From positions 1 to 34,096 of the forward strand of contig JAAPAO010000385.1 in the NCBI GenBank assembly GCA_013115145.1: a DNA stretch of 34,096 bases. Direction: 5' to 3'. Source of the stretch: Perkinsus chesapeaki ATCC PRA-425 (taxonomy: Eukaryota > Protista > Perkinsozoa). The position numbers and the translations under genes are program-made. Shown here piece by piece: positions 4,128-30,910 of the stretch (position 1 is its first letter; each line of letters begins with the position of its first letter). The notes beneath the pieces were generated by a model. That model searched no databases. It was not told the origin of the DNA and saw only the letters and a list, made by a program, of their open reading frames with translations.

Positions 4128-4164
4128 ACTGTGACTTACAGTCTGTGAGGCTCACAGTGTGAGC
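4128..4164. other. Two stacked +14 inverted-target scars (targets ACTGTGAG and CTGTGAGC, offset by 1 bp)
   Basis: 4128-4149 = ACTGTGA C TTACAG T CTGTGA G (13/14, one C>T). 4143-4164 = CTGTGAG G CTCACA G TGTGAG C (14/14). Confidence 0.85.
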
Positions 4165-4941
4165 CATCGCAGAGTGGTCTTACCCAAGTAAGCGTCATCT
4201 CGTACACTGAATGCAGAGCAAACATGGCGCGGTGCTGCGCCGCTGCCGCAGGATGCCGTGGAGCTGTTAAGAGTTGTCTGACTACTTGACTATACGGAGT
4301 TGAACAAAGTTTCTTGCTCCAACTCCTTTTTTCTAGCTCTCTACTCGCGAGGATTAAACCTCCGGACTTTGAGTTCTCTCAGGGTGCGTTGCTGTCATCG
4401 CCTTGACTCTGAGGTTGTGTGGAAAGGAGAAAAACTTGGTGCACAGTATGACTGTCGCACGATGCTTGCCCAGGCGTTAAAAATAACTGGCTTCGCCAAG
4501 GCTTCGGTTAAATGGGAGAAAGTGTCTAAGAAAACGAGTTAATTGGCGCTGGTGGGTAATTCTCATCCAATGCTAGCTACACCGATTGCCGCTGACCTGC
4601 CCACCGTGGGTAGCCCAGCTGTAGCACGTCAGGAGGCCCACGTGCGCCATATCGTCCTGCTGCCTGTAGCGTCGACAGTTGGACAACTTTTCGAAAGGAT
4701 CCTAACCGCGGTGAAGCCGTGCATTTCCTCTAGCGAGTAAATCTCAGTATGAGTACAGATAAAGGTGTTGGCGGCAAACCCATGCAGTTATCACGTTCCA
4801 TTATTTTGCAGTGTGTGCGCCGAAGATGGCGCGAAAACTTCTGTTCGCTAAAGAGAGCAAGAGGTAGCAAATCTGATTTGAGTGAGCTGCAACGGCCTGA
4901 CGGGCCCTGATATATGCGAGTATCACAAAATTTTGTGTGTA

Positions 4942-4963
4942 GCGTGAATTTCACGGCGTGAGA
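4942..4963. other. Degenerate +14 inverted-target scar (12/14 match)
   Basis: G CGTGAA T TTCACG G CGTGAG A: one hexamer mismatch and one apex mismatch. Confidence 0.4.
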
Positions 4964-6191
4964 TAGCGATCATTAACAATATTTTTTTTCGAGGAGCACC
5001 ACTGCTATTTGGGCTAGGACAAACTTATTGTTGACATCGGTGAATCCCGCTAGCCCTGGCGCTGTGCGGCTTGATCACAAACTGAGTGATGCAAACAAAT
5101 GCAATGCAGTCTTGATGCCGTCGGCTTCTGACTTGTGAAGTAGCGTGAAGTTTATCCCACTATAGGGCGGTAGCCGCCTAATTCTTTTCAACTAGATTTC
5201 GTTGAGGTGTCAGTGTCGCCTGCCATGCCAGGTTAACACCTTTGTAGTCCTATGACTATTGTGATGTACAGTGGCAGCACATTGGCACACGATGGGAAAG
5301 CGGTGCGTTATCTGATGACTCAAACCGGGGGAAAAGTCCCCCACCCCTCGGGAAAAAACAGTGGTATGCCCATTAAGACCGTGTTCATTACAGCTTCGAT
5401 GTCCTTCGGTAATCCAACCGCGATGCAGACAAGAACAAAAGACTCTCTGGAAGAGAGTGGTGAAAACCAACATCGTGGCCATCCGTCACCTGTGAAGTTG
5501 ACAGCCTCGATATGCTGGGTTCAGCAGTTGATTGGTCTGTACTGTCTACTTTTGTGAATGACTTATGAGTCATTGTGATGTCGGCTTCGTATTAATCATT
5601 TACATAATTAATTACGTTATTATTGTAGCTGTTATTATCTTCCATCCTTCGTAAGATAGACGGTGTTTTGTTATAAGTCCTATTAATCATCAAACCGTCA
5701 TATCAACGACGATCTTTGGAAGCGCTCCTGCAGCTGAAACAAAGGATGCCCTTGAGAGGCAGCAAAATGCCTTTACAAAGACATGCTTGAGATCCCTCAC
5801 ATTTGATGCGGATGCCGTGACCGCCGAATTACTCAGGTAATCACGTGTTGGAGTCAAGCCGTCAACCATGGTCCCCGAGGAAGCGAGGGACCACTATCTC
5901 CGACCCTCAGATGTTCGGTAAGGGCGTGTGTTCGGTTGGGGTGTACTTCAGGACATAACGTATCGGATACGCCTTGTGATTATTTAATAACCGATTCCTA
6001 TTTTTCTGCCAGGTATCGGCGATCTGCTCTTGAAATACCTTGACTGCATAGAAAGATCCCTCAGTATGTGGGCAGACGTCATACCTAATACAGGGATGCC
6101 CCCTGATGAGCGCCCGTTCAATTAAATGATGGCTGTATGAGTGTAAATCATTACTCGCGAAGTAGTTCCCTCACGTCCCGCTCTCGGCGCG

Positions 6192-6213
6192 TTCGCACCG
6201 TGCGAATCGCACG
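6192..6213. other. Perfect +14 inverted-target scar, target TTCGCACG
   Basis: TTCGCAC + CGTGCGAA (reverse complement of TTCGCACG) + TCGCACG; 14/14 constrained positions. Confidence 0.9.
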
Positions 6214-6982
6214 CCACTTCTGTCCCGCCAGGGATGTAGGAGGTCGATAGTCCAAACAGACGGTTTCAGGAAACTAGACGTCAGAATCCGAGGAGCTCCT
6301 TTGGTCCGTGCTGGAGAACTGCCCATTGCTCGTCTTGACGGCACAACGGCTTAACAGCCCACAGTCGGACGAAGACAGAAGTCCGGCAGTGAATTTGGTT
6401 TACTTAGGCCATCAAGCGGTCATGATGCAGCCGACTTTGACCGGTCTTGGACCCTAACTGACTTGCACAAAAGGACCATTTCCTCGCTTGAGAGAAAGGA
6501 ACAAAGTGGAACTCTCAGCGGCAAAGTGGCCTGTTTGCACTCTCGTCCTGACTTCTCAGCTTGCTTCGAGTTAAGCTCATTAGTTCACGCTTAACTTTCC
6601 TACTATCAAAGTGTGAGCAATCAATGGCGCGATGTCATATGCCTACGTCCAGGTATTCATAATTAAGACAAAAGATTCTCTTACCGAACTGACGCTTCGA
6701 TGTAGTCTACAGGTTCGCATTCAATATGCGTTATTGTAACAACAGTTTTTACACTCTTATACCGTCATATATATGCATCCGCTTGGGGGAGTAATGCCGA
6801 GAGCCTCCGCTATAGGTTCCAGCGATTCCTGGTTCTCATTCCTTTCTGGACAGCTCTCTCTCGTGATAAGGGAGTCTGCCTGAAACTATCAGTTTCAACC
6901 GCTCCTTTTTGAGTCTTCTGGGCCAAGAAAAAGTCGACCCTCCATGATTGAGGAGCGTAGCCAAACTAATATTTATTGTACG

Positions 6983-7004
6983 GTTTCAGCCTGAAACTTT
7001 CAGG
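6983..7004. other. Perfect +14 inverted-target scar, target GTTTCAGG (spans a putative splice acceptor)
   Basis: GTTTCAG + CCTGAAAC + TTTCAGG; 14/14. It duplicates the TTTCAG acceptor-like motif 14 nt apart. Confidence 0.9.
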
Positions 7005-7563
7005 TAAAGAGCTCAATCCTGGAGAAATTGAGGAAATCTTCCAATCAAACTGCTTGTACATTGAATGTAAGGGAGAATAAGCTATGCGGCCGGCGATTGC
7101 TAGTCGCGTGGAATCGGGGCTTAAGATGTCAAGATGCAACATGACGCAGCGAGAGTTGATCGACATCTCAAGAAAGATGAAAGTAAGTGTAAACAATCTA
7201 TGCCATTTAAAACAAGTGATAGGCTACTTGGCTCCCTCATTGCGTGGCGGTAGCTTGCATCATCAGGAGTTGGATAAATCCGATGCTGACGGCTCGGGCA
7301 ACATCGATCGTGATGAGCTAAGACGTCTTCTTGAGACACTTGGAGAGGAGCTGACTGAAGACGATTTAGAGATGGCATTCGAGGAGCTCGATGAGGATGG
7401 AAGTGGGGAAGTTGAGTTCTTTGAATTTGTGAGTATTCATCGCCTGTACCTTAGAGCATAATTTAGTTAGGTAAAGTGGTTCACATTACCGGAAGATAGC
7501 GATGGCTCTGAGAACCAGGATGCGATCGATGATCTGTTATTGAGCTTAATGTTGCATGAGTGA
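7004..7563 (+). CDS. EF-hand (calmodulin/centrin-like lobe) Ca2+-binding protein, 3' exons; 5' end unresolved
   Basis: Exon 7267-7428 encodes two canonical EF loops (DADGSGNIDRDE and DEDGSGEVEFFE), flanked by CAG and GTGAGT. Last exon 7471-7563 encodes VKWFTLPEDSDGSENQDAIDDLLLSLMLHE*. Upstream exons around 7004-7193 are plausible, but their frame is ambiguous. Confidence 0.75.
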
Positions 7564-7878: not shown

Positions 7879-9138
7879 TCAGAATTGAAGTGAAGCACCG
7901 TAGATGCCCATCACCATCACCAAGGAAGCAACCGCCACCAGCAACATGAACAACAAAGTCTCCCATAAGGGTATTGAAATTTTACGGCGCCTTTTCAGCT
8001 TAACGTAACAAGCAATAGGAAAGAACACTGATAATTGGGTGACGCAGAAAGCACCAATGAGCCCTACTAGAACGTCTACCTTAGGGACAGCAATAGCAAT
8101 GCATCCCTCGAGAATGATGAGGAGAGTACGAGAAGCCATGAGGCATACTCTCAGTTGAAATGTGGACCAACGCCGTCTCTCAGAGATGGCAGACCAAGTC
8201 ATATCTACACGCTTTGCGGTAGGAGTGAATAAGACAAGAATATGTGACAATACGACGACGATAACTATAATGTTGATAAGCCATCCAAAGATCGTGAGAG
8301 GCTGATTGGGCGGCGAAATTGCGGCGAGGACGGTATCGGCACTTGCTAGCGATTGGCTGTAAGCAAGGTAACCAAGCTCCAAAGTAGAGGTATATAAGCA
8401 GAGACAGAAAAATATGGCTGTCGATAGTGCTTTAGGGAAGTCGCTAGGATTCGCCATACCATGGTATACAGTCGGAGTAACCGTGCTCAAGCCATAAGCG
8501 AAGAAGTAGGTGGCAAATACGGATATGAACTTTAATCCTTTCTGGGGCATAACCATAACCTCATTACTCACCCCATCTGTGGCAAGTTTGCTGATGCATG
8601 CAGCGATGATGACAATGACCATGACAGACGCCGACATCGCCCCCACAGCGGCAATACTGCCAACATGCTTCATATCTCTTATCAAAGCCAATGATATAGA
8701 AATCGCCGTCCAAATAGCAGTCCATATACGTCTACTGAGAACCTGCGTCAACGTTTCGGTTGTAGCTGCGAGTAGGAGAATCATGACGCTGCAAACCAGG
8801 ATGAGAGCAGTGTGAAGAATCACACCGAAATAGACAGAACCTCCAACACCAAAAGCGCTGCCGCCAGCGTCCTCATAGCACTTCACATCTCCACTTTCGT
8901 TACCTCTGACAAGACTTAGGGTTCGCCACAGAAGATGGTTATTATAAAAGATTATGAGTGAGGCAATGAAGAGACCGATAACGCTCCCAAGCCAACCCGC
9001 TTGAACAGCAGTCCCTGGCAGGGCTAGTATACCAACTCCAACGGCTGTCATCGCCAAGGTGCAGGCAGCCTTCATCCAACCTATACCACCCAAGACCACT
9101 CCATCGTCGACATTTCTACAAGATGCATCACGTGACAT
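7879..9138 (-). CDS. Transmembrane amino-acid transporter (Aa_trans/AAAP family), intronless, 419 aa
   Basis: TM1 motif TAVGVGILALP, QAGW.G.., YEDAG..AFG, FATYFFAY, L..LIGAF; about 11 hydrophobic segments; uninterrupted ORF. Confidence 0.9.
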   Translation of the reverse strand: MSRDASCRNVDDGVVLGGIGWMKAACTLAMTAVGVGILALPGTAVQAGWLGSVIGLFIASLIIFYNNHLLWRTLSLVRGNESGDVKCYEDAGGSAFGVGGSVYFGVILHTALILVCSVMILLLAATTETLTQVLSRRIWTAIWTAISISLALIRDMKHVGSIAAVGAMSASVMVIVIIAACISKLATDGVSNEVMVMPQKGLKFISVFATYFFAYGLSTVTPTVYHGMANPSDFPKALSTAIFFCLCLYTSTLELGYLAYSQSLASADTVLAAISPPNQPLTIFGWLINIIVIVVVLSHILVLFTPTAKRVDMTWSAISERRRWSTFQLRVCLMASRTLLIILEGCIAIAVPKVDVLVGLIGAFCVTQLSVFFPIACYVKLKRRRKISIPLWETLLFMLLVAVASLVMVMGIYGASLQF

Positions 9139-9415
9139 TTAATGAAGCAGAATCCTAGGAGGTTGAAAGCTCAGAACCCAAGCTGGACCCGCGTATAACG
9201 AAACAAGATTTGAGGTGGGAAAAGCGTGAAAAAGCCGAGATGCACGACCCTACAGCAGACCCTTGCCTCGGCAGAGACGGCGGAATCAAAAGTCTAATAT
9301 TCTAATGGTGACAAACGAATAAAACCGTTCTGGCTACCAGCCTAGACTGATGCAATAGTGTTATAACTATCGCTTATCGAGAGTTTGATAACTAGTCTAT
9401 CAGCGGCCACTATTC

Positions 9416-10675
9416 TCAGAGCAGTGCAACAATGGCACCGTATATCCCGATACCCATCGCTAAGAGAGCAAGCAGAAGTAATAGAATATACCACAGCACT
9501 TCAAGCTTTCCTATGGGGATGCCGGCCATCCTCTTCAGCTTGACATAGCAAGCAATTGGTATGATGAAGCATAGCTGTATGACACACAATGCACCAATCA
9601 GGTTTACCAACTTATCAACGCTTGGTATTGCTATACCGATAAGGGCTTGTAGAATAACAACACCACTCCGAGCAGCTAACGACCAGATACGAGATCTCCC
9701 CTTTATGCAACGGGCTCTGGAGAGAAGGTCATCCACGGCTAGTGCGGTGGGAGTAAACAGTACGAGGAAATGTGATGCTACTACGACTAAGACAACCAGA
9801 TTGATGACCCATCCTGATGGAGAAAGCCTCTCATTTGGAGGTGATATAGCCTGGACAATGGTGTCAGTTTGTAGTAGACTATTTCCATATGCTCCATACC
9901 CGAGCAACATGACTACGGCATACACTAGGACGCAGAAGATAGCAGCAATTGCGAGAGATACGGGGTAGCGTTTAGGCTCTTTCATGCTGAATGTAATAGT
10001 GGGAGTTGTGGCAGAAAAGCCGAAGGAGAAAATGAAGGTAGCGAAGTTGCTTAGGAGGTCTAGTGGGTCATTCGACATCACGCTGTAGTCCTTCGCCGGG
10101 CCACTTTCGATAAGTTGCTGAATGCAAGCAATAATTACCACTGCAACTAATACACAGACGGACAGGACGCCGATCGATGCTACAATACCGACACTTTTCA
10201 TTTTTCTTATCCATGAAAGAGGCAGGCATACTAAAGCCCAGACCATGATCCACAATCGAATATTCCATGTTTTAGTTAAGGCAACGGTAGTAGAAGCTAG
10301 TAGAACCAGTAAGACAGCGCAGATGGCTGTTAGGACCACATGCAATATTAAACCAAAGTATACCGATCCCCACCGGCCAAATGCAACAGAACCCATTTCT
10401 TCAAAGGTGGGCATGGCCGTAGTGCCAACACCTGTAGGGTTGAGGAAAAGAGCTTTCCATAACAGAAGACCAGCAATGAACGAAGCCAAGCCGGCCACGC
10501 AAAGTGTAATACAGCCTCCAACGAAGCCGGATTCAGCTGTTGCTCTTGGGAGAGCTAGGATGCCTATGCCTACTGCGGTCATAACGATGCTGCATGATGC
10601 CCTCATGACCGACACACCACCGTTACTAGCAGTCGAAATGCCTTTGCCAGTTTCTTCGAAAGGTGACGAGGACAT
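9416..10675 (-). CDS. Transmembrane amino-acid transporter (Aa_trans/AAAP family), intronless, 419 aa; tandem paralog
   Basis: TAVGIGILALP, FEEMG..AFG, FATFIFSF, L.NLIGAL; colinear with the 7879-9138 protein. Confidence 0.9.
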   Translation of the reverse strand: MSSSPFEETGKGISTASNGGVSVMRASCSIVMTAVGIGILALPRATAESGFVGGCITLCVAGLASFIAGLLLWKALFLNPTGVGTTAMPTFEEMGSVAFGRWGSVYFGLILHVVLTAICAVLLVLLASTTVALTKTWNIRLWIMVWALVCLPLSWIRKMKSVGIVASIGVLSVCVLVAVVIIACIQQLIESGPAKDYSVMSNDPLDLLSNFATFIFSFGFSATTPTITFSMKEPKRYPVSLAIAAIFCVLVYAVVMLLGYGAYGNSLLQTDTIVQAISPPNERLSPSGWVINLVVLVVVASHFLVLFTPTALAVDDLLSRARCIKGRSRIWSLAARSGVVILQALIGIAIPSVDKLVNLIGALCVIQLCFIIPIACYVKLKRMAGIPIGKLEVLWYILLLLLALLAMGIGIYGAIVALL

Positions 10676-12564
10676 TCACAAGCAGAAAAAACTGAAGTGG
10701 GAGTTGTTAACTCCTACTGTGCGACACTCGTACTGCTTGGATATCCGATTTATATCGCGCATTGGTATATGTGAAATTGGATTGCAGTATGTACTACTTC
10801 GCTCCACCCGGAGGACAAACGTTTGTTGCAAGCCTCATTCATTTGGTAAGAACCATACTACTGTGTACATCCAAAACGAATAGCATATGTACACAAGAGC
10901 CATTGTACGGTGCATCTAGGCCCTTACGGCAATAAAACACTTTCACTAGTAATACTACGCTTGGAGATAGCGATTAAAACAAAACGAACAACTTCGGTAT
11001 CCTAGGTTGTCCCTTGATCGCCGTGAATACCGAAGCTACAAGAGCTACGATTAAAGCACGATAAGACGTTAATATGTGCAGATTACCCGACTGCAGTAGC
11101 TCACAGGAGGGCTCAGCAGCTTGAAAATCGCACTTGGATATCAATCAACTAGCATCAGTTAAAGTGTCGGAATATTGAGTCTTCAACGGTCAGCATTTGC
11201 CAACCTACGTTAAGGTTTATCATCAACGCTATAATGAATCATTTCACCTCAGCTCTCATAATCCGGTGGGTCATTAGCTACCGAAACAGCAAACGCCGAG
11301 GCGAAAGCGCAGCAACTTCAATCTAAATAAATGCTCCATCACGGGAGATTAAAAACACATTGGAAAAATGTAACAATCGGCGGAGCGAATTACAACAAAT
11401 GCAATTCACAAAGGCTCCCTGAATACCTTCGTATCGGCAACTCTTAGCACTACCTAGAACATCAGTGGTACCGGCAGCGTGAGAGCCTTTTTTTTTACGC
11501 TAAGCCTCTAGAGAGCCTTAGCGTGGTACGGAGGACGAGTCAGACGTAGGACAAAAGTAGATATGAGATAGTTTCCTCACTATTTATCGGAGGGAAGTCA
11601 AGCTTTATCATCAAACTCGCAATAGTTATTATGCCTCAGTGTGGTGCATGGCTTCAGTTTTCCACATGTTCTCTTTCAGAACAGGTCTGTGTATGAAGGT
11701 ATAATCATCAAAGGCAATAATCAATTAATAAGAGCATCAGGCAGTACGAACACCTAGGGTGGTTTGTCATCATCATTATCAGATGACACGCATGAATATG
11801 GAATCAATCATCATTAGCTTGATACATTTATCAAGAGAGATTGTGTTGTTATACACCAAGCGCAAGCTGCTATAAATCGATCGCCCAATCGATTAGTGGC
11901 GAGCGCGGATTCTCCAGCGGAGGCAATGCAATCGATCACGCTGTTCAAGAAGTGTAACCAACACCGTTGCCAATCATCTCATCAATTCAAACTGATCGTT
12001 ATTGGCTGTCCCTCCTGAGCTGCACTGACTGTGTGCACGACTCTCTCAATACAGCCGTAAATCGCTGAAGGTACTCGAAGTTCTATTTCGGCTAACAGGA
12101 ACATGATATCCCTTCGTATAATTCAAACTGAATACCACCTGCTATTGTACAGGCCTGCTATGATGAAAGTATTTCATTTGGCTTAATCTTTTCTGTCTAC
12201 CGTCTTTGGCGGGACATGGAGACCTCATGATGACGAGACTGAGCATATTTGCCTGTAACACCCTCATCTCTAGCAACTTAGTTCCGCACTTCAAGCACGT
12301 AACTGACGATCATAGTGAAAGTATCACTAAGAAACTTGCGGTTAACTATTTGAAGTGTATGTGTTGAAAACATTTCGTTCATTGTATGTTGTGAAGGCTA
12401 GATAGTGTGGTCAAATACCGTACACCCTTGGGAGAGCATTTTCACTGACTGGTCTGTACAATCTCAATATGAACTTAGATTCTGAATATAGGAATGATTT
12501 CATCATATCATGGGGTACGTACGACCCCATTCAAACCTCAATATGAAACAAAGTGAGCAAGAGG

Positions 12565-12765
12565 TTGCTGGTGAAGGAAGGGGACGAAGGAATAGTCAGT
12601 GACTATTAGTCATCCGCCTTACAGAACTTGGACTGAAACTCCACACAGTGTAGACTTAATGTGTGAAGGAAGCATTCCAATACATCCAAAAAATGCAGAA
12701 CTCCAACGGTGATGCCAAAGAGGAACGCGAAGCCTACTGATATCCAAATGGGTTGGAAAGAGCCA
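12565..12765 (-). pseudogene. Degraded 3'-terminal fragment of a V-ATPase subunit a gene (closest to the 15052 copy)
   Basis: Aligns with ~15080-15265. Reads GSFQPIWISVGFAFLFGITVGVLHFLDVLECFLHTLSLHCVEFQSKFCKADD*; the conserved HTLRLHWVEF has become HTLSLHCVEF, and a 14-bp frameshifting insertion lies at 12592-12613. Confidence 0.9.
12592..12613. other. +14 inverted-target scar (13/14), target ATAGTCAT, with the empty site visible in the paralog
   Basis: ATAGTCA G TGACTA T TAGTCA T. The paralog at ~15106-15116 reads AATATCCATCC (11 nt) versus 25 nt here, exactly +14. Confidence 0.85.
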
Positions 12766-13649
12766 CTGTGCCATAGGTTGTTTATTCGAGTTCAATGATG
12801 TGCTGAGTTCCTTTGCATGTGAGATCCATAGGACATCGAGCAGGCTTCAAAGAATTAGTAATGTAGAACAATCACGCCAAACCTGACGTGGCCAAGACGT
12901 CGCAGCTGATGATAACGACTCGGAAATTGCACATTATACCCGATAGAAAGCTCACACACTAGGACATACAAGGGTCGAGGTATGCAAATACAGCATATAT
13001 CACATAGCGGTGGTTCCAGCGCAAGTACATTGTGGCTGTCGCGAAGGTAACGACTGCGATAGCAGTAACCACAATACTGGAACGTTGCACCTCGTCTGTA
13101 TTAGTAGGGACTCTCCTTGAAGACGAGACAGAACGGGACTAAGTACCGTCGCCGCTCTTTCTGCCAGGCTTGCCACGACCACCTTGTCTAATTTTATCAG
13201 AGTTTTCATAGAAATATTGAAGTGATTAATGCGTGGCGATTCGTAAACCGGACCCATCTCTCATTCATCCTTACCCGCGTTGCTAATCTAAAACTAGAAG
13301 GGTCATCAGCGCTATGGCGTCAGCAACCAGCATTGAATAACCCGTGGTCCTCCCCGATCACCCTCGTTTTGTCGTTCTGAGCAGAGAGATCCAGCTCATA
13401 TCATTTGTCTTCTCTTTGATCTTGTGTCGAAACTTTTTTCTCGGATCGCCAGCGGATCAGCATCCGCCGGCCGGTTTTAATGCCCATTCATAGCGCAAGG
13501 GTTTGCTAGAGACTCTCTTGGATGTAGCAAACAATACCATTCTACTGGGAACTATTCAAACACACCACATGAGTGTAAATTCAGTATATCTGAGTATGCA
13601 GTAGCCAGTGACACTAACTGGATACTACTACAGCCAGACGCAATGAAAT

Positions 13650-14386
13650 AGAATATTTCGTATCTGATTCTGGACAATCATATGCCGGTATAGCGTCATA
13701 TCAACTTGTTTAGCAATTCAAGACGTTTGTTCCACATTTAGGCCATTACGTTCACGCTATACTATCAGAGATGATGAGCCAGAAGTCTCAGATCAATGTG
13801 AAAGGCGTAGCTTCAGGAAATCCATTCATTGCTCCTGGCTTCCAGTCACAAATGGCACGTATTCGAAGTAGAAGTCAATTCGTTTCAGTTACGGAAACGA
13901 TCCAGACATGGCCTTCAAAAGTGGTACAGCTCCGAGCGTTATTAAGCTGTATCACTAAAGCCTAGCATAATTAGATTCTCATATACGCGGGTGATCAAGA
14001 CTATATAGCCAATTGGATGGGCAATCGGGCATGGGTGCTGAACCTCAAATAGAACGGCATCGATGGGTACAAGAGTGCTAAATATGCATCGTTTGAAATG
14101 AGCCAGCCAGCCGCACGGTAAACGTTTCCGCGCGGTAATCCGTCTAGCATAATATTCCTTCTCATCTTCAGCTTCCCAGTGGGAAGAAGGTTGGTAAACT
14201 CAAGACCTTCACTCAGTCGAGCTGAGGCGGCCAGCTGAGCTTCTTGCAGGTGTGAAATGGGTTTTGGCGCATGCGCTCGAAGTCTCTGATCAACAGTTCT
14301 TCAAAGTGGGGCACTCGGTGGCGATGGAGGAACCAGTAGGAATGCTGAAGGCATTGAGAGATTTCGTCAACAACGAACTAGGCTAG
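13650..14386 (+). pseudogene. Serine carboxypeptidase S10 pseudogene (inverted, 5'-truncated, internally deleted paralog of 1640-3852)
   Basis: GQSYAG|HYVHAIL, INVKGVASGNPFIAP, YGNDPDMAFKSG, ILIYAGDQDYIANWMGN, VGKLKTFT..GGQLSFLQ|FFKVGHS, with intron positions matching the intact gene. In-frame TAG at 14050-14052 (Trp in the paralog), TGA at 14223-14225, a donor GT>AT near 14098, and loss of the exons matching ~2870-2035. Confidence 0.85.
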
Positions 14387-15051
14387 AGGCAACAGAAACT
14401 TGTCTTCACCAACTCACATCCGAGCTCCGGCAACCTCATACCATTACTGACGGCCTGAGGGCCGCGGAAATCTGTTTAACCCATCTTTCTTACATTACAA
14501 CGTATCTCGCCGGGATCTTTGAACCCCGGCCTATGTAAAGGATCTTGAGACTCTTGAGCTGAATTGTCAGCTCCAACTTCGGTTATGATGTCCGATTTAA
14601 GAGTCTCCTCTTTTCATAAACTATCGGTACTCGTATTGCGTTGCAGAAGTCGGAGGGTTCAGCCGGTGATACCAACAACAACGACACTCTGACCAGATAA
14701 GAAAGTTATGAAATATCGTAAATCGTCACAGGATGGATCTGGAGCTGGAGTTGGAGCTCAAGAGGGAGATGATCCAATGGATCCAATTAACAGTCAACAA
14801 CTATAGTCTTTATCGTCTCCGGAGTGGAACAGTGGAGGTGAAGGCATAGGGTTATGTGCCAGTCAGTCGGTCAACTCGAATGCGAAGGATTTCTGGTTTT
14901 GTATTTTATAGGACCAGCTTCGCTGACTCTATCGCATTTTCAAAGGTATACTATCAAGACAAGCTGTTGAATAATATTAGAAATCATTTCATCACATATC
15001 ATGGGATACACACTTCTCATTCAAATATCAAAATAAAATAAAATAAAAAAA

Positions 15052-17788: not shown

Positions 17789-17990
17789 AAGCTTACTCGA
17801 TAGCAGCAGCGTCAGCAAACTACTAGCAGGAGCTAATTGAAGAGGAGGAACGCAAGACAGCATGGAACCTTTTCCATTTGTATAGGAACACGAATAAATG
17901 AATAGGCTGTTCGCCTTAGCGAGTCCCAAGGGATCGGATAAGAAAAAAGCGCAGATAACTTTCGTTGAATGCAATCCGTGTTTAGACAAT

Positions 17991-20508
17991 CTAACCCTCA
18001 AGCTCGTTCTTGATGATATCGAAGTGACGATAAGGCACGAACGGATAACCATCGCCCATATAGAACTTGGACATGAATTCGACCCAGTGCAGACGAAGGG
18101 TATGAAGAGTGCACTCTAAGACATCCATAAACATAAGTACACCCAAAGTAATACAGAAGAGGACTGCCCAAGAGCAATAGATCCAGATGGGGTTCATCAC
18201 ACCGGTGGACTCGAGAGCACCTTCCATGATCATCTGGAAGAACACAACGGAAAGCTGCTGATGTGCCAAAGAAAGGGCCCAAATACGGAGGTATGATGCC
18301 GTATGGGACACACAACCAAGAACGTATTCGATGGTCTCAATCATCTGGTAGATCCAGACCTCATCCATACCCTGCTCATCTATCTCCATGTCGAGCTCAG
18401 CCTCGTTATCATCCTTAGGGAGAAGGGACTGAGCCTCGATGTCCTGCTGACCAGCGGCGGCGCGCTTAGCAGCCTTCTTGGCCTTATACGACCTCTGGAT
18501 ACCAATAATGATCGGCTTGGGTAGCAACATAAGTGGCAAGGAAAGAAGCAAGATGATCATGAACCATTTCTGGATAGGGAACTGACCGTGGTATAAGGGC
18601 TGCTTATCGGTTTGGTTAAGACCGAAGGAGATCAAAGTATTGATCAGAGAGGGGGCACCGTTAAGGGTAGGATCCTGATCAATAGGGGTAACCCACTTGT
18701 AAAGGATCATCCAGTCCATGTAACCGAAGAAGAGGAGAAGGAATGCCATCTGGGGAATGCAGACGGTGATCCAATCCAACGCATCACGGAAGTAGGTATC
18801 ATTACCAAACTTAAGGCAGACACCAAAGATCATTTGAGCGACACCGAATAGAACAGAAAGCTTCATCTTCAAGGAGTTCATGAACAAAAGCTCGTTAGTA
18901 GAGTTATGCCACGAAGGATCGATACCGAAGGGATAAGGACCGCTACCGTTGCCGGTGTTAAGAGTATCAAACCATGGCTTAGGCTGCATCTCGAAGTTCA
19001 TACCGTGGCCGTAATCGGCGGGATCCTCATAACGAGCAGTACCGAACCAATGGATACCAACACCAAGGAGATCGTTGTACATGCAACCAGCGTAGATGGC
19101 AAAGAGACCCATAAACAAGATGAGGTATCTTGAGTAGACCAATCCTTGCAAAAGACCGTTGTCGCTGTACTTCCACTTCTTAGTGTTTTGGATGGCCCAC
19201 AGAGCAAACCAAGTCAAAAGGATACCATGACCAACATCACCGTACATAGTACCGAACATGAAGGGGAAGGTGATGATACTTACAACACCGGCGTTGAACT
19301 CCTGATAACGAGGCGTACCGTAGGTATCGATAAGAGCCTGGAAAGCGGCGCTGAACTCGGTTGTCCTAGTGTAAGTAGGAGGCATGGCCTTGGGGGCGTG
19401 TTGGTCATCAATAAGCATGGCAGAAGCGGGCAGGCCGGCACTGGCGAGGACCTCACGGATGGAGTCCTTCTCCTTGGTGGGGTACCAGCAATCGCATCTC
19501 ATGGACACATCACCCTCGAAGAGGTTAAGGGTAGCGTAGATACTCCTCTCCTCAATGCAGAAAAGCCTCCACTCCTCAATACGAGAGTTACCGCCCATAC
19601 GGATAGGCTCCAAGAGACCACGGGCCTCGTCCTTAGTGTACTTGGCGAAACCGGCAAGGGCATGACGCTTGTCCGCGATAACAACCTCGAGGTTCTTGAT
19701 CCTCTCCTCGGCCTCCTCCTTAGTGGCGGGCCACTGATAGAGATGGACACCAACGGCGCTGCAGATACGGTTGAGCTTCGAAGCCATAGCGGAATCAACA
19801 TTAGTGCTCTGGAAGTAGATAACAAAGACACTCTTGCGACTGTCGGGGATCTCAACGAACTGGGTGAAGGTGTTACCACGAGTAGCACGGAAGACGGTTC
19901 TGGCGAAGCTGTCTTGATCTTCCATCTTCACAACACCAGCTATGTTAGAGAACTGCATGTGCTCCTCCCTGCGACGAGAGCCCTGGCCCGTAGGCTGGCC
20001 CTGAAGAAGAGGTTGGCTGAGTCCCTCGCCCGCTGCGACAAAACCGGTTGAGATACTGTCCTTAACAACATTAAGCTCCTCGATGGCGGCCTCGAGCTCG
20101 GTGGTCATCTCCTCGTTGTTGCTGTGGAAGCGAACGAACCTCTCGTAGACTCTCTTGACCTCGGCCTCGAGACTATCGAGATTGAACTCGTCATCATGGT
20201 CCAAGAAGTCATCGATACGGTTCTTGCTGACCTCAACATTGGGCATGTTCTCGACCTCCTTCCTTAAGAAGCGGATCATTCGCCCCATCTCCTCAATGCG
20301 CTGGATGTACTTACGATAAGGCCTAAAGGACACTAATACAAAGACGCTACATTAGCAGGTGGGCCTCCTACCTCTGCATAACGGATGAGTTCATATCATC
20401 GAACATGATCTGGGTCTTGTGACCGAGTATGTCAACATAATCTCTGGCCCACTCATGGGGCAGCACGATAGTGCCGTGCGTCATAAACTCACTTCTGAAA
20501 ATTCCCAT
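17991..20508 (-). CDS. ATP6V0A: V-type H+-ATPase V0 subunit a, copy 2 (exons 20508-20372 and 20322-17991; 822 aa)
   Basis: Same motifs, SHTASYLRIWALSLAH; 49-nt intron (20323-20371) at the identical position. Confidence 0.95.
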
Positions 20509-21259
20509 GCTTGGTAGAAATAAGCAGGAACTGAAACAGTAGAAGAATGTCAAATCCTCACCATACCACCACCAAAGCGGAACAGGATACACCGGATACA
20601 CATCCTGTTTACTTCAACCCTAATCGTGAACAACAAGCCGAAGTAACAATTAGACTTCAAGTCGCCCAAGAACTAAGCTTAACCGCTGAAGGTGAACAGC
20701 TTTACCACCACCTGTCCCCTACCGACACAATTTGGGGACTTCCTAAGCTCCAAGATGCTTCTGGTAGCTGCGAAAGATTCACAGCAAACCTTAAGCTTAA
20801 GCTTCTGCTACAGTTGTTAACCATTGTTCATTCCCTACTCGACGGCAAGCATCCGATGGTTGATAGCCATCGAGCTGTCTTCGAGCTAGTCTTAAGTCTA
20901 AAGGGCAACCTCGGCGGCCACCGAGAGGAAGGCTCCTACTTATGGCTCAACAAAGCTGTGTTCTAGATACAGGATGAGAAGCTATGAAGTGTGGAGTATC
21001 TTTTGGTATAAAGGTGAAGCGGCGGCGAAGGTTAATTAACTACTTAAGACAACATAATAGACCTTTCACTCGAGATTTAGTACAATCCCAACAACACGCC
21101 ACTACGTCGAAACGATAAACGGCGATTTGAATAATAGCTCAAAAAGGAGGAGTTGGATAAACTGTTGGAAATGAATCGTCTATCAATTCCTTCACCACCT
21201 CAACAGCATCATAAGTCACGTAATAGTTATCATCAACACCTTTACTGCTGCTAAAACGT

Positions 21260-23779
21260 CTAGCCTTGGAGCTCGCCCTTAATGATGTCGAAATGACTGA
21301 ATGGTACGAACGAGTAGCCGTCGCCCATGTAGAACTTGGACTGGAACTCCACCCAGTGCAGACGAAGGGTATGGAGGAAGCACTCCAAGACATCCATGAA
21401 CATAAGTACACCCAAAGTAATACCGAAAAGGACAGCCCAAGAGCAGTAGATGTAGATGGGGCTAGCCCAGCTAGTGGACTGGAGGGCACCCTGCATAATC
21501 ATCTGGAAGAACACCACAGAAAGCTGCTGATGCGCCAAGGACAAAGCCCAAAGACGCAAGTACGACGCGGTATGGGATACGCAACCAAGAACGTATTCGA
21601 TGGTCTCGATCATCTGGTAGATCCAGACCTCATCCATACCCTCCTCCTCGGGCTCCTGCTGTTCGGCGGCCTTGTTCTCCTTATCAAGGAGGGCCTGAGC
21701 CTCGATATCGTCGTTGGCAACAGCGGTACGGCCTCTCTTCTTATCTCTGATAGACCTCTGGATTTGTATAATAATAGGCTTGGGCAGAAGCATAACGGGA
21801 ACAGAGATCACAACAGCCAGCATGAGCCACTTCTGGACAACGGGCTGGCTGAGATACAGTGGCTGCTTATCAGCCTGACCAAGACCAAAGGAGATCAGAG
21901 TGTTGATAAGGGAAGGTGGGCCGTTGAGTGCTGGGTCCTGGGTAACTGGGGTGACCCACTTATAGATAATCATCCAGTCCATGTAACCAAAGAAGCCCAA
22001 GAGGAATACCATCTGAGGGATGGCAACGAAGACAAAGTCAACCCAGTGTCTGAAGTAGGCATCATTACCGAACTTAAGGCAGACACCAAAGATCATTTGA
22101 ACGACACCGAATAGAACAGAAAGCTTCATCTTCAAGGAGTTCATGAACAAAAGCTCGTTAGTAGCACCATGCCACGAAGGATCGATACCGAAGGGATAAG
22201 GACCGCTACCTTCACCGGTGTTAAGAGTATCAAACCATGGCTTAGGCTGCATCTCGAAGTTCATACCGTGGCCGTAATCGGCGGGATCCTCATAACGAGC
22301 AGTACCGAACCAATGGATACCAACACCAAGGAGATCGTTGTACATGCAACCAGCGTAGATGGCAAAGAGACCCATAAACAGAAGCAAGTAGCGAGCGTAA
22401 ACCAGACCCTGCTCCATACCGCTGTCACTGTACTTCCACTTCTTAGCGTTGGACAAAGCCCAGAGAGCAAAGCAAGTAATCAAAGTGCCATGACCGACAT
22501 CACCGTACATAATACCGAACATGAAGGGGAAGGTGATGATGCTCACAACACCGGCGTTGAACTCCTGATAACGAGGGATGCCGTAGGTATCGACCAAGTT
22601 CTGGAAGGCAGCGGTGAACTCGTTAGTCTTGGTGTAGGTAGGGGGAGAGTTCCTCGGCTTACCGGCATCGGTGACAAGCATGGCCGAAGCAGGATAGTCC
22701 GACTCGGCAAGAACACGACGGATAGAGTCCTCGTCCTTAGTAGGATACCAGCAATCACATCTCAGAGTGACATCACCCTCGAAGAGGTTAAGGGTAGCGT
22801 AGATGTTCCTCTCTTTGATGCAGAAAAGCCTCCACTCCTCAATACGAGAGTTACCGCCCATACGGATAGGCTCAACAAGGCCCTTGGCCTCATCGCGAAT
22901 AAACTTGTCGAAGCCAGCCAAGGCATGGCTCTTATCGGCAATGATGCCCTCCAAGTCGGCGATTCTTCTAGTAGCCTCCTCCTTAGTGGCGGGCCACTGA
23001 TAGAGATGAACACCGACAGCGGTGCAGATACGATTGAGCTTGGCTGACATGTAACTGGAAGCCGCGTGACCTTGGAAGTAGATAACAAAGACACTCTTGC
23101 GACTGTCGGGGATCTCAACGAACTGGGTGAAGGTGTTACCACGAGTAGCACGGAAGACGGTTCTGGCGAAGCTGTCTTGATCTTCCATCTTCACAACACC
23201 AGCTATGTTAGAGAACTCCATGCCCATGCGCTCTCTACCAGTACCGCGAGCTGTGGGCTCGCCTTGGAGAAGAGGCTCCTCGACAGCAGCAGCGCCACCA
23301 GCAGATACAGACCCAGAGCTCAGACTGGCCTTAACGACGTTCAACTCCTCGATGGCCGAATCCAGCTCGGTGTTAAGCTCTTCATTGTTACCACAGAAAC
23401 GAACGAACTGCTCGTAGACTCTCTTGACCTCGGCCTCGAGAGTGTCGAGGGTGAACTCATCATCATGGTCCAAGAAGTCATCAATACGGTTCTTATACAG
23501 GGTGACATCAGGCATCTTAGCGAGCTCGTTGTTGAGAACGCGAAGCATGCGCTCCATGTCCTCAATACGTTGGACGTACTTGCGATAAGGCCTGAAGACC
23601 AAGCTGTTAGCTCGGCCATACAGAGCGAATCGAAAGGCTTACCTCTGCATAACGGAGGAGTTCATATCCTCAAACATGAGCTTGGTCTTGTTACCCAGAA
23701 GGTCAACATAGTTCCTGGCATACTCGTGCGGCAGCACGACAGTGCCGTGAGTCATAAACTCACTACGAAGGATTCCCAT
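21260..23779 (-). CDS. ATP6V0A: V-type H+-ATPase V0 subunit a, copy 3 (exons 23779-23643 and 23591-21260; 822 aa)
   Basis: Same motifs, SHTASYLRLWALSLAH; 51-nt intron (23592-23642) at the identical position. Confidence 0.95.
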
Positions 23780-24612: not shown

Positions 24613-27600
24613 GTTGTCATCACCTTCGTATTCTCTATAGTAGGGCTTGTGTTCTTCTGGATACTAGTAGAAGTTCTGGTGCGTCGGAAGATCACCAACC
24701 AGCTGTATGACATCACGGAGGGTCCTTCTGGAATCTCCCTCGCCAAAGGTACATGCAACGATTGAAGCACCCGCGATCGCGGGGAGTTGATGCGTGCGGA
24801 CTCGACATGCGCAATCTCCCGCCCGAGCCGGACAATCCTCGAGGGCATTTCAAATCGATCTTCCATGGTACGCTCGCTGGTCACGAACCCTCTAGGAGAC
24901 TTAATTTCCGCCCAGCCGTTCGCAGTCTGACGGCAGCCAGCAACGACAAGAGAGGCGATGACGAGCGACTTCTCAGCATCATCGGACTGGATGCATTCAT
25001 GGTGCTCCGCTTTCTAAAAATGAGCCTTATTTTCTGCACTGTCTCCACAGCGTAGGAGTCTAGCTGCAGACAGCTGTTATAGAGCCTCAATAACAGATAC
25101 GTCATGCTCGTATTGGTACCGGTGTACTACGCTCAGCCGGCATCGGGAGAAACCGTCGGTAACGGAATCTCCTACATAAACTCCTCACACATAAATCGAG
25201 ATAACGTATCGCACGCCTGGGTCTCGGTGAGAAAATCTTCCGGGTGCGCTTGGATGGTATCTTGCCAGGTCATCAGCTGCTACGCACTTACCTTTTTCAT
25301 CTGCGCGCTGATGCGATACGAATGGAAACATTATGCACGCATGCGCACGGTCTGGCTCGGACAAATCCGGGAATCCACGCGACAGGTGACAAGAAAGCTT
25401 CTAAGCTTTCTTTCGAGAGCTAACAGCATCATCAGATCCGTCACACTGTGATGGTTGAGAGCATACCGCCACAGTACCGATCGAGGCGGGCCATTATAGA
25501 GTACTTCGAGAGGATTCTTGGCAGAGGCAGCGTCTACTGCGCGTAGGCCCTGGCCCTGACGACGATCCAACGCAATTAGGTCACATGCTGCTCATTAGGT
25601 ATGTCTGTCGGGATACGGCCAGCCTGCACAAGATGCTTTCACAGCGGAGCCGACGCCAGTTCCTTGCAGACATATCTTGTGACTCGGGAGGAAGTGAGCA
25701 CTGCTGTGGGGGAGGGTCGGTAGGCCGATTGGCAGACCTGGAGGAGATCGAGAGAATTGAGGAGAAAATCGAGAAGACCAGACGAAAGCTGCGCGTGATG
25801 CACGAACGAGGAGCTCTGCTCAGGAAGGACCTGCCTAGCCCGGCGGCGGCAAGGACTGGTGCCCCGTCGCCGACCAGAGAGAAATTCGCCAGGCACGATT
25901 CTGCTGCGTTGCAAAGTAAGCGAGGACTCGAGGCACATTTTGCAAGTTTCGGCATTAGGCGCCGTGAAGGCCATCGACCGAGCTGTTGGATTGATACCAT
26001 CAGTTATTGATGATAGGGACTGTGGGTTGGCCAGCGGACTGGTGGAGGACAAAATCTGACCTTAGGCACGGCTTTGGTTACCTTTGTGGACATGCGATGT
26101 CGATCAGCCGTCTCACAGTTGAGTCTGTCGCAGGAGCCTAACCATTGGTAGGATCTCATCGCGATGTGTCGGACTTCATTGGCAGGCACGTTAGGGAGGC
26201 TCCGATGCCCAGTGATCTCATCTGGGAGAATATGACTGTTGCGCGTCACGTCACAGGTGGTGATTCGCCTCAACACTGCTCGTTATATTGAACGTATTTC
26301 AGAGACCAGAGGGAAAGTCGTCTTCGCTTTACTCGTCGTCTGGGGTCTCTTCTACACTGTGCCGATCGCCGCCATACAGGAGCTCGCCTCGACGCTTACC
26401 TTTAACAGTATCCTTCCTCGCTTGTCCAGTCCAATGGCTCTCCCTCAGACACTGGGGCCAACGAAGATCCTCCGCTGTTCAGCAGAGATTGGTGGATCCA
26501 GCTTGTTCACTTGTAGATAATCCGAGCAGCAGCTCACGTCACATTGGCATGTTTGTTGTTGCAGATACCTCCCCACGTTCCTTCAACTGGTCCTGCTCCT
26601 AGCACTACCGGCCATTTTCAGATTCGCCGCGGTTTAGTAAGCTCGTTCGTCTATTCGTAATGCTGTTAGTTGGAGTGCTTCAGTTACGAGCGTTATAAGC
26701 TTCGGAGCGAGGTCACCATGCACGTAGCTCGACGCTTCTTTGTCTTTCAAATGCTCACCGTCTATGTTATCGTAATTCCGCTCCTCTTGACCTCCATCTC
26801 GCCCCCCAACACTGCTCCGCAGGTCCTTGGCGAGCTTTGGCTCAACCTCGGTGACATATGGGACAAGTACTCAGCCGCCGACACAACCGTGTGTCTATTG
26901 AAGGCTATCGGGAAGGTGAGCTCCTGTCCGGCCCTGATAGTAGCCCAGGTTGCCTGCCCTCAGGACGTCCCAAATGTGGCGGTATACTTCATTACAGTTG
27001 TGTGCGCGAAGATCGTTACGAATGTCGGGTAGGTCTGACCCGCTCGCACCGTCTCTGAGATTTCCGCCCTCGCCTTCAGCATGGCCACTTTCCATCCATT
27101 TGAGCTATGTGCCCTTTTAATCGGTTATTTCCGCATGGAGCCCCAACAGAGGAAGTACTGGGTGGAAGACGGACGGCCTGTTTGGGAGATAGAACAGAAA
27201 GCTGCTGCCGAAGATCGCCGCAGACCCGGAGGTAAGTTCGAATTCGACGGCGTAGGCGGCGTAGGCCCAGTGCACCGTTAGTTAATTCTGGCCCAGAGCT
27301 GCTTCCGCCTATATACGAGAACAAGCTGACTCCTCCGACTCGGTGGGACTTGGCGCATGTCTACTACAGCGAGGATGTGCCCAATATATTATTTGTAAGT
27401 CGTAAGCCGGCCAGTTAGTTGTTCGCTGAAGTTTACTTGTTCAGGTCCTGAATATCTGCATTACCTTTGCAGTCATATCGCCTCTGGTCCTGGGTAATCC
27501 TCGAGAGGCGCTTCACTCTGACCCTCTCCTGTCCTCAGTTGCTGGATCTATTTTCTTCCTCTGCGCCTGGGTGGCATTTACCTACCAATTCGCCCATATG

Positions 27601-28323
27601 CACACACATGCCTATGAGACCGGCGGTTTGATTTGGAAGCATCACTTCATGGTAGCTCCTTGTCCTCATTCCACCGAAGCTCACCTTATGGCAGTGCATT
27701 TGCGTGAGCCTTGCTTTGAGCCACATCGTATTGCTGGGAGTTCTCATTGCCAAGTTCGACATGCAAGACAGGGTGGCACACGCCCAGATCATAGCCGTCT
27801 TGGTGCTGCCGTTTTTCGTGGTAGGAACGTTCCTTCGTCCTCGTCGCGTTTCTAGCATCCTTCAGTGGCTTTACTACCGCAATTGCGTCTCGACGTACAC
27901 TCGTTGCACCGAGTATGTGTCATTGAGCGTGGCCGCAGGTCTGGACGGTTCGGTGAAGACAAAGTAAGCCTACGCGCTTCTGCGGTGGCAACCGTGTTCA
28001 TATTCAGGGCAGCAATAGGGCAAGTCGACCCTGTTATCGACGAAAGCTTCTCTCCGGAGCTCTACGTGCACCCTTTCCTCCAGAACCGAACGCCTATATA
28101 CGACATTCGGGGCCCTTTGCCGCAGCAGGTCGCCGTGAAGTCTGATGATTCGGCGGCTGCCTCTGCGATGACGGCTCCTTCCATGGAAGTAGCATCATCT
28201 GTCCGAGACACAGAAGTTTCGGCAATAGTGCAGAAGGAGACCGATGATGATGATGATGATTTTTCTGATGCGGAGAGTGCTGCTGAAAGCATGGGAGCCG
28301 AGCCGGATGAAACCGTCGTTTGA
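24613..28323 (+). CDS. CSC1/OSCA/TMEM63 (ERD4/RSN1-like) ion channel, multi-exon; may begin further upstream (~24045)
   Basis: Exon peptides IGLDAFMVLRFL and LVLVPVY (RSN1_TM), MRYEWKHYARMR, AFVTF..PMPSDLIWENM (PHM7_cyt into the 7TM region), LFYTVPIAAIQELAS, RRFFVFQ, VAVYFITVV, YVHPFL, and an acidic tail ending at 28323. Confidence 0.8.
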
Positions 28324-28404
28324 TATGGGAAGACGTCATCAGGCCTCTTGTGACCATTCACTGATTGATATTATCATGTTGCTTTTGCGACTATTAATGC
28401 ATGC

Positions 28405-29434
28405 TTGATCGTGTCGGATGGTCTACCCACTAAACGCGCTGTTGTTGTTCGAAAAACAGTTGTCAATCACGATAGTGCAGACGCAGTCTTCATCGCCATG
28501 GAGCCGGGAGTCGAAACTGCTAGAAGGCAAGATGTCACGGACTCCTTCGTTTCTCGTTCACGGAGAGCGGGGGCTGGCATCGCCTTCCCGCCGGAGGGCT
28601 TCACAGTTGGCGTTACCTCGCTTATAGAGATCGCTGCCTTCCGGAATGGAAGGCGAGACCATGACTGGTGGGCGGCGTTGGTCCCTCAATCGATTGGGAC
28701 AATGCGCAGACTAGTGGGCGATACAGTCTCAGTTCTTTATCAAGTAAGACCGCTAGGAGGTCCGAGACAACGCGGGGGCTCATTCAAGGTGGCTGCATCC
28801 AAGAAGAGCGGATGGACACTTATGGACGCCTCTGACAAGATAGTGCCACCGGGGATCGAACCCGGGTGTATGGCTATGACTCCCTCAGAAGTAACGGGAA
28901 AGGCTACAGAAACAGCGGCAACTGGTGTATACGTTTTTAATGAACTATTTCAAGCGAGCTATTGCCATGGAGACACTAGCCCAGGCGACACTCCGAAACT
29001 GCTAGTAGAAGCGATAACAGAAGACTTCTGGGGCCGCCAACGCCACGAAGGTTATGGCTTCTTGGATCTCCCTCAGGTAGAGTTTGACATAGACAAGCAC
29101 AAGTTATCCAAACCCTTTACAAAAGAGGCCAAGATCTCCTCCTAGGTACATGGTCGACTAGAGGTTGAGGTGCCGCTTTGGAAGACACCATCATCGAACC
29201 CTCAAAGAGATGCATGGTGTGGCACTTTTGATCCTCTTCTATCAAGATCGTTGATCGTTTTTGATACCCGAGGCCAGCAACGAGGAGCGAATTCGGCCCT
29301 CGTGCCGGGGAAGGGTACTCGCCTGACATATCGCTGAGCAACTTGAGCACGACTCAGGCGACACGAAGTTCATCCGCGGTCTGAAGAATGGAGTTGTCGA
29401 TGTGAAGATTGATACTGTTGTCATTTTTCCATAA
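28405..29434 (+). CDS. B9-domain (B9-C2) ciliary transition-zone protein, MKS1-like; start uncertain
   Basis: PKLLVEAITEDFWGRQRHEGYGFLDLPQ|VHGRLEVEVPLWKT resembles the B9 core (D.WxRxRxEGYG...LP...W). A putative last exon reads ...GVVDVKIDTVVIFP* with TAA at 29432-29434. Confidence 0.7.
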
Positions 29435-29464
29435 AGAAATGTGAAACTGCCAAGTCCATCTCGT

Positions 29465-29486
29465 CAAGCCATTGGCTTGAAGCCAA
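29465..29486. other. Perfect +14 inverted-target scar, target CAAGCCAA
   Basis: CAAGCCA + TTGGCTTG + AAGCCAA; 14/14; 31 bp after the B9 gene stop. Confidence 0.9.
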
Positions 29487-29606
29487 GGACGGTAGGCATG
29501 CAGTTCCTCAAGACATGACTCACACATGTGATCAATTGTTATGTTGAGTTGTGTAGCTGGCAATCCTTCGGAGGCGACCGCACACTGCGTATGCATGGCT
29601 GGAACT

Positions 29607-29628
29607 TCTAGATAGTCTGGACCAGACT
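29607..29628. other. Aged +14 inverted-target scar (12/14), target TCCAGACT
   Basis: T CTAGAT A GTCTGG A CCAGAC T: both apex bases are correct; the two mismatches are both C>T in the left hexamer. Confidence 0.55.
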
Positions 29629-30669
29629 GGGAGGCGCTCCACTAATTCACATCATTGAAGCCTCGTCTAGGAATCCTAGACTAGAGCCAGCTAATACACT
29701 CTTTACCGCTTAATAACGCATAATGCAAGTCGTGTTGACGGTGCTAACACAAGCGTTGGCTTAACGCATCCATAGGGTTGATGTATGTTCGAGTAGAGTA
29801 GCCTGTACTTGCCTCATTTTTGTCAATTTCGAGCTCGTCGACCAACAAGAGACTAGGATCATTATTGCTCCCTGAATAAACCCTAGATGAACTTGGTTTC
29901 TCACATCTGAAGGTCTATTGTCATCATTGTCACAATATTGTTCCCTGGCAGGATATCCTGGAACTCCCTCCAATCTCCCACACTCAGCGGTTTTACATAA
30001 CGGGGGTGAGTGATTTACAGTGCATCTCTAGTGACGATAAAACAGTCGTGCTCCGAGTGATTCGGTGTTTGTTCCTACGTGGTGAAGTCTTATTGTCGAC
30101 GAGAAGATAAAGCACATAAAGCACAAGCCGGCATCTCGAATCGTTCACCAATGAGAAAACGCCAGGATGAGAATTGCCGGTAAGGGGGACCCTCGAAGAC
30201 CCTCGCAACAGCATTTGTATTGTGCTGCGGCGTTAGAGGGTCAGTATAAGGGCATATGACCACCACGTGCTTCAGTTGGATAGTTGCAGTTAGTGATGCT
30301 ATATCATCCTTTATATACTCATGTTTTCGCTAGTGGTTCGACTTGGACACGAGGTGTTGTGTTCTTCCGAGTGTTTCTCCGAATCATGTCCAACTCCGCT
30401 ATAGAGGTATGAGAACACTGGGTGAACACAACACGTTTTACCAACGAGTTTTCCCTCTCGCTGGTCGGACCCAAGCGCTGGGGACGTGGATATTCGAAAA
30501 AAACACATTTTGGGGGGGGACACCCTGTAGTTGATACTTTCAATTACGACATTTCAGTAGAAAATAAATATGATAATAGATACCAAATAACTTATGATAC
30601 AAACGATAGTACTTACGATATAAAGCTGTTTAAAGCAGCCCGACTGTTTTTTCGGTGAACTCCGGCTGG

Positions 30670-30691
30670 CTCCTAGCCTAGGAGTCCTTGG
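30670..30691. other. +14 inverted-target scar (13/14), target CTCCTAGG
   Basis: CTCCTAG + CCTAGGAG + TCCTTGG (one A>T). Confidence 0.8.
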
Positions 30692-30888
30692 AGCGTTCTC
30701 ATGAGAGGGATTTGCAGATTCGTGTTCGATAAAATCCTCTTCGATTCTAGAATCCATCTGAATCCATCCATCCATCCTAGAATCTATTCGAAGCCGCGGG
30801 TTCAATGATTATTCCACGAACGCTCTTCAAACGAGCATTCCAGACGCTCCTGGGTACCTAGCTTCGCACTGTTTGTTCAACAGCCGGA

Positions 30889-30910
30889 GTTCTACGGTAG
30901 AACTTCTACC
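30889..30910. other. Perfect +14 inverted-target scar, target GTTCTACC
   Basis: GTTCTAC + GGTAGAAC + TTCTACC; 14/14. Confidence 0.9.

Follow-up and report, generated by a model that had tools for sequence, protein, structure and literature searches.

Eleven short scars, all built to one geometry, are present in contig JAAPAO010000385.1 of the shellfish parasite Perkinsus chesapeaki (assembly GCA_013115145.1). The entire contig, with its 34,096 bases, was analyzed and is called the window in the following. For an eight-letter target x, each scar consists of the first seven bases of the target, the reverse complement of the complete target and, again, its bases 2 to 8 (x1-7 + revcomp(x1-8) + x2-8), that is, 22 bases with 14 constraints. 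Each scar probably records the insertion and subsequent excision of a hAT-type cut-and-paste transposon.

Number of scars and chance expectation

Five of the 11 scars are perfect (starting at 4143, 6192, 6983, 29465, and 30889), two break one constraint (12592 and 30670), and four break two (1541, 4128, 4942, and 29607). With Markov-1 shuffles, the numbers of copies expected with exactly 0, 1, and 2 mismatches are 0, 0.002, and 0.12, respectively. The 11 positions had been listed in the initial annotation of this DNA, and a rescan recovers the pattern at every one of them. The scar at 4128 had been counted as a one-mismatch copy, which is fair in terms of substitutions; it breaks two constraints because a change in the middle arm counts twice. 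The eight-letter targets are mutually unrelated when compared with each other, as had also been stated, and what the scars share is a geometry and not membership in a repeat family.

The surplus over the same shuffles extends to three mismatches (7 matches vs. 1.2 expected) and to four (28 vs. 10.8), both counts being inflated in part by shifted registers of true scars. Because the surplus continues in this way, older, decayed scars probably exist in the window. Candidates with three mismatches each are found at 610–631, 5436–5457, and 29659–29687; some of the three-mismatch matches are shifted registers.

Occurrence in the genus

The same type of scar is found in Perkinsus marinus and Perkinsus olseni, and the 133 kb of Perkinsus DNA covered contain 27 distinct scars in all. 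In P. marinus ATCC 50983 (GCA_000006405.1, an older reference), a 21-kb syntenic locus contains three perfect and three imperfect scars, and a second P. marinus locus contains three more. In P. olseni, one locus has a single scar and another has four. Additional scars occur in two Logan contigs of run SRR12548988. Identity between orthologous proteins, for P. olseni and P. marinus, is no higher than 58–60%, so that the orthologous intergenic (empty) sites are not alignable across species. With species so diverged, the near-perfect scars must have arisen independently in each lineage.

The control sequence, about 160 kb in total, comprises Vitrella (26 kb), Cladocopium (96 kb), and a related metagenomic eukaryote (40 kb); it is without scars and gives just two low-complexity AT-rich matches, with two mismatches each. 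A chance origin is ruled out by the shuffles and by these real-sequence controls. One perfect match to the seven-letter version of the pattern, in Vitrella, is a CAG/CTG repeat and no scar.

The triple tandem array of V-ATPase a subunits, together with the adjacent amino-acid transporters, is syntenic between the window (7879–23779) and P. marinus (L002:1–11260, from the ATCC 50983 reference). Two P. marinus assemblies (L003:8031–8052, a Logan contig, and L002:16728–16740) are 99.84% identical and gap-free over 8 kb and then diverge within a scar. At the divergence point, L003 has the canonical 22-mer; L002 has x1-7 followed by three P-nucleotides (GTC) and then unrelated host DNA, including an open reading frame of the LicD family. 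The difference could be an alternative outcome of repair, or a rearrangement with its breakpoint in the scar.

A single target length and a single offset

The target length k was varied from 3 to 15 in the window, and the number of bases skipped at each of the two turns from 0 to 2. Only k=8 is enriched, and neither k=7 nor k=9 gives a perfect or one-mismatch copy in the window. The sharp peak at k=8, which had been proposed as a check, is thus seen, and k=8 alone is enriched in the P. marinus and P. olseni loci and in the contigs of run SRR12548988 too. Among the offsets, only 1,1 (one base at both turns) is enriched. General template switching is rejected on these two scans; variable arms and variable switch points are expected of it, and a single geometry is observed. 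For elements of the Transib/RAG type, the expectation is a 5-bp duplication with a hairpin without offset; in the window, k=5 is near chance (1 match vs. 0.53 expected) and offsets 0,0 give none.

Hairpin footprints can be written more generally as x1-7 + a left P-nucleotides + b right P-nucleotides + x2-8. In the window, no footprint class with a+b between 4 and 18 is found other than a+b=8. In the 133 kb of Perkinsus DNA, a+b=8 gives nine perfect copies (16 with at most one mismatch), and no other class in that range is above chance, bar one 5+0 candidate. This candidate variant, in P. olseni (L006:18824–18842), reads x1-7 + five left P-nucleotides + x2-8, with a net gain of 11; it falls within a called gene span, and about 0.05 such matches are expected by chance over all splits. 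The classical Ac-type form (1+1, net +8) is observed three times against 1.85 expected in the 133 kb. The scar form (net +14) is at least about ten times as frequent as any other class tested (the 1+1 form and the classes with a+b from 4 to 18), and it dominates over every other detectable footprint class; other short and less constrained forms are indistinguishable from chance.

State and placement of the scars

Ten of the scars (all except that at 12592) were compared with Logan contigs of two independent samples from separate studies, X1 (2022) and X2 (2020). All ten are unchanged in both, with zero differing letters and zero indels, and the support from independent reads on which the initial annotation had made its reading depend is present in these assemblies. 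Haplotype differences do occur in stretches near the scars. Over the 141 bases of 5867–6007, 10 differences separate two haplotype contigs of similar depth, and the adjoining 5978–6118 is at double depth, which suggests that much of the contig is one of two diverged haplotypes. The RNA runs contain nothing of the window.

The scar at 12592 lies in a V-ATPase pseudogene fragment. In the alignment, it is an exact 14-nt insertion relative to the three intact V-ATPase a-subunit paralogs of the window, and in all three the 8-bp site is empty. It is the derived state, with a gain of 14 bases. The scars at 4128 and 4143 are stacked: the latter occupies the third arm of the former plus one base, and their targets (ACTGTGAG and CTGTGAGC) are offset by 1 bp. 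The pair reads as two successive events, of which the perfect scar at 4143 would be the younger. Over the 27 Perkinsus scars, those with 0, 1, and 2 substitutions are in the proportions 9:10:8. Such a flat spread would fit steady formation and neutral decay.

All 11 scars of the window lie outside called genes, and the earlier observation that none falls within an intact coding exon is upheld. The scars at 30670 and 30889 are past the end of the gene table, and the region is called non-coding there in the sense that no open reading frame of 90 amino acids or more is present. Over five gene-called loci, 25 of 25 scars are intergenic (P=2.6e-10 under uniform placement), a restriction that is expected of a frameshifting indel, and intergenic DNA carries about 0.5 scars per kb. 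Pairs of scars less than 50 bp apart are somewhat over-represented (3 vs. 0.64 expected).

Several scars lie within 30–300 bp of a gene end, as would suit a structural motif under selection, for example a hairpin signal near gene ends. Such a motif, or else an artefact of sequencing or assembly, is a highly improbable source of the scars. The motif is disfavored because the scars are unrelated in sequence, fold merely into a weak 6-bp stem (−5 to −7.5 kcal/mol), are unconserved in that they decay by substitution, and in one case are located in a pseudogene. The artefact is rejected because the ten compared scars are present in both independent samples, and scars of the same type also in the older reference assembly of P. 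marinus.

Proposed excision and repair model

The shape of the scars agrees with hAT chemistry in every point. The hAT elements duplicate 8 bp of target upon insertion. In Hermes, the first nick is reportedly made one base into the flank, which is then sealed as a hairpin. In the model considered here, insertion would duplicate the 8-bp target. At excision, the transposase would nick one base into each flank and seal each flank as a hairpin, so that each tip complements the element-adjacent base. With c for the complement of x, the left hairpin would be x1-7 c8 c7..c1 and the right hairpin c8..c2 c1 x2-8. Both hairpins would be opened by host nucleases, 8 or more bases away from the tip, and would unfold into 3′ tails c8..c1 and x1..x8, whose perfect complementarity covers exactly the 8 duplicated bases. 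The tails would then anneal, the flaps would be trimmed, and the gaps would be filled and ligated to give x1-7 + c8..c1 + x2-8, with a net gain of 14 bases. The repair would follow an annealing-driven route (of the microhomology-mediated or the single-strand-annealing type), and a single product would form every time, since no other available homology comes near the 8-base match. The number 8, the one-base offset at both turns, and the symmetry would all be explained by hairpins of the hAT type. We infer the transposon, the hairpins, and the repair route; the agent is read from the shape of the scar, since no element, transposase, or occupied allele was found.

Two features expected of hAT elements are seen in the scans, the 8-bp target duplication (k=8, in the window and in the loci of both other species) and the one-base offset as described for this superfamily (PMC5873905). 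In footprints of Ac/Ds, the one-base offset at both turns is a hallmark; in yeast, hAT P-nucleotide arms reach up to 20 nt, and microhomology is present at 85–100% of hAT joints in yeast and Arabidopsis (PMC5873905). The footprints of Ac/Ds and of other hAT elements (maize, Arabidopsis, yeast, Candida) resemble the scars in the retained 8-bp duplication, in inverted P-nucleotides centered on the complement of the element-adjacent base, and in microhomology at the joint, as in the route proposed here (PMC5873905). Known footprints are diverse (in Candida, 128 events gave 28 types), and most are short. In Perkinsus, on the other hand, essentially all detectable events take a single maximal form (+14), in which each tail runs the full length of the duplication and the two are annealed over 8 bases.

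In the target, the initial annotation had noted T at position 2 in six of the eight best cases, which is the case, and had seen in this a partial match to the hAT preference nTnnnnAn. From 27 targets (a small sample), the symmetrized logo is weakly palindromic, C-T-T-n-n-A-A-G. T2/A7 occurs in 23 of 54 instances (43%) against a background of 26% (p=0.006). The fit of the targets to nTnnnnAn is partial and weak.

That weak fit is one of several points that weigh against hAT excision. A search of the window for elements with inverted ends and 8-bp duplications finds none. No transposase domain is detected with Pfam in the unannotated or intergenic open reading frames of the window and of about 100 kb of other Perkinsus loci, no genome search with a hAT query having been made. 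The contigs of the two samples, where +14/empty polymorphisms and element-occupied alleles had been suggested as a check, show neither; this is weak evidence, because contigs hide rare variants. Finally, hAT footprints are heterogeneous in every system studied, and the uniformity seen here is without precedent. The proposal of hAT excision made in the initial annotation is therefore sustained in part: it has for it the peak at k=8, the excess over shuffles, the support from reads, the offset, and the empty site in the paralogs, and it lacks the element, the transposase, and the occupied allele.

The same history of insertion and hairpin excision might be due to another superfamily (Mutator-like elements, or MULEs, with 8-bp duplications; Merlin/IS1595-like elements; or an undescribed family), although this is unlikely. 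No hAT element is directly seen here, and the MULE Muta1 resembles the proposed model in its flank hairpins and its 8- or 9-bp duplications (PMC5499845). MULEs are expected to make a 9–10-bp duplication, sometimes 8; there are zero matches at k=9 or 10, and the 8-bp case remains compatible. Muta1 differs further in that its hairpin product is of 43+43 nt, which suggests no one-base offset, and in that more than 90% of its excisions in yeast are precise (PMC5499845); the one-base offset is documented for Ac/Ds (PMC5873905). Merlin-related transposases with intact DDE motifs are present in P. marinus, and Merlin duplications are of 8–9 bp, but there is no known excision chemistry for Merlin and the Perkinsus copies are without definable ends or duplications (PMC8101967).

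A history without any mobile element is more improbable still. It would involve a host or domesticated nuclease making hairpin-ended breaks with an 8-bp stagger, or else a polymerase of fixed footprint that switches template, copying forward, then backward on the opposite strand, then forward once more. The absence of an element at or near any scar and the extreme uniformity of the product, unlike known repair footprints, agree with this. Yet template switching and snap-back synthesis yield variable lengths, a single hairpin-forming break with no prior duplication would by our reasoning give x1-4 c4-1 c8-5 x5-8, and the weakly palindromic target preference together with the stacked events suits a transposase.

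Other known systems share parts of the pattern. In V(D)J coding joints, where Artemis opens the hairpins made by RAG, the flank hairpin is likewise opened off-center, and a short piece of the flank is thereby copied in inverted orientation. RAG is not known to nick anywhere but exactly at the border (without the one-base offset) or to make a target duplication; the P runs are of 1–4 nt, and the joints rely on classical end joining. The forward-inverted-forward order of local copies is also that of inverted triplications (DUP-TRP/INV-DUP) and of synthesis-dependent templated insertions. Those are variable in size and breakpoints and come from replication or repair synthesis, whereas the scars are fixed, with an 8-base unit and one-base overlaps.

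Other features of the window

The genes called in the window and the individual scars are collected in Table 1. The region 10900–15050 is gene-free and built of pseudogene pieces. Among these, the V-ATPase fragment at 12559–12765 is 84% identical to 15073–15265, and an inverted fragment of the S10 peptidase at 13737–14252 is 65–71% identical to 1783–3101. The region 5204–5850 is multi-copy, with a contig depth of up to 14 times single-copy and many loose ends at 5204, 5294–5308, 5589–5592, and 5702; this repeat has no clear inverted ends, no duplication, and no Pfam match. High-copy repeats are present at 29957–29995, 30264–30657, and 31052–34039, and their depth reaches roughly 60 times that of single-copy DNA. 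The third of these is a retroelement with a reverse-transcriptase open reading frame, and other copies of it show several internal deletions or variants. The Rfam and tRNA scans of the window are empty.

Table 1. Genes and scars of the window (strand as called; targets as eight-letter x)
Feature	Position	Strand	Target	Remarks
S10 peptidase	1640-3852	-		gene table
EF-hand protein	7084-7563	+		gene table
Amino-acid transporters, two	7879-9138, 9416-10675	-		gene table
V-ATPase a subunits, three	15052-17511, 17991-20508, 21260-23779	-		gene table
139-amino-acid gene	20547-20966	+		gene table
RSN1_7TM protein	25451-28323	+		gene table
B9 protein	28498-29434	+		gene table
Open reading frame with reverse-transcriptase domain	32687-34039
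Scar, two substitutions	1541..1562		~GAGCAGAT	78 bp past 3′ end of S10 peptidase gene; identical in contigs X1-X4
Older scar, one middle-arm substitution	4128..4149		ACTGTGAG	shares 7 bases with 4143 scar
Perfect scar	4143..4164		CTGTGAGC	~290 bp upstream of S10 peptidase gene
Scar, two substitutions	4942..4963			intergenic
Perfect scar	6192..6213		TTCGCACG	intergenic
Perfect scar	6983..7004		GTTTCAGG	80 bp upstream of EF-hand gene (7084-7563)
Scar, one substitution	12592..12613			within V-ATPase pseudogene fragment (12559-12765)
Perfect scar	29465..29486		CAAGCCAA	31 bp past end of B9 gene (28498-29434)
Scar, two substitutions, both transitions	29607..29628			intergenic
Scar, one substitution	30670..30691		CTCCTAGG	non-coding DNA
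Perfect scar	30889..30910		GTTCTACC	non-coding DNA, just ahead of retroelement-rich stretch

Biological meaning

In full-text searches, no description is found of such scars in Perkinsus, in keeping with what had been supposed for this lineage, nor of a uniform +14 hAT footprint anywhere. The literature on end joining and transposons in Perkinsus, including two papers on transfection of P. marinus, contains nothing decisive on repair pathways. The chemistry as such has precedents; a product this uniform and a genomic record this dense across the genus appear to be undescribed.

A joint reading of the observations, which we regard as doubtful, is that Perkinsus mends hairpin-capped breaks by obligate annealing (perhaps with classical end joining absent or bypassed), that each excision leaves one deterministic +14 scar, and that scars, or the sites marked by them, serve again as targets or as points at which larger rearrangements break; in another version, the scars would be written by a domesticated nuclease of the hAT type and not by free transposons. 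If obligate annealing were true, the genome would be a complete and datable ledger of cut-and-paste events, and about one fixed indel would be added to intergenic DNA per few hundred point substitutions.

Past cut-and-paste activity is normally invisible because the footprints are too varied and too short to be recognized without the element. The Perkinsus footprint identifies itself through its 14 constrained bases. It allows past excisions in three Perkinsus species to be counted and mapped, and their ages to be estimated from decay, and it gives the target preference without any element being present. A product this uniform suggests that this relative of dinoflagellates and apicomplexans opens and joins hairpins in an unusual way, and such uniformity of repair bears on genome editing in P. 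marinus. The +14 insertions apparently supply Perkinsus with intergenic indels at a steady rate and also inactivate genes, the V-ATPase pseudogene being an example.

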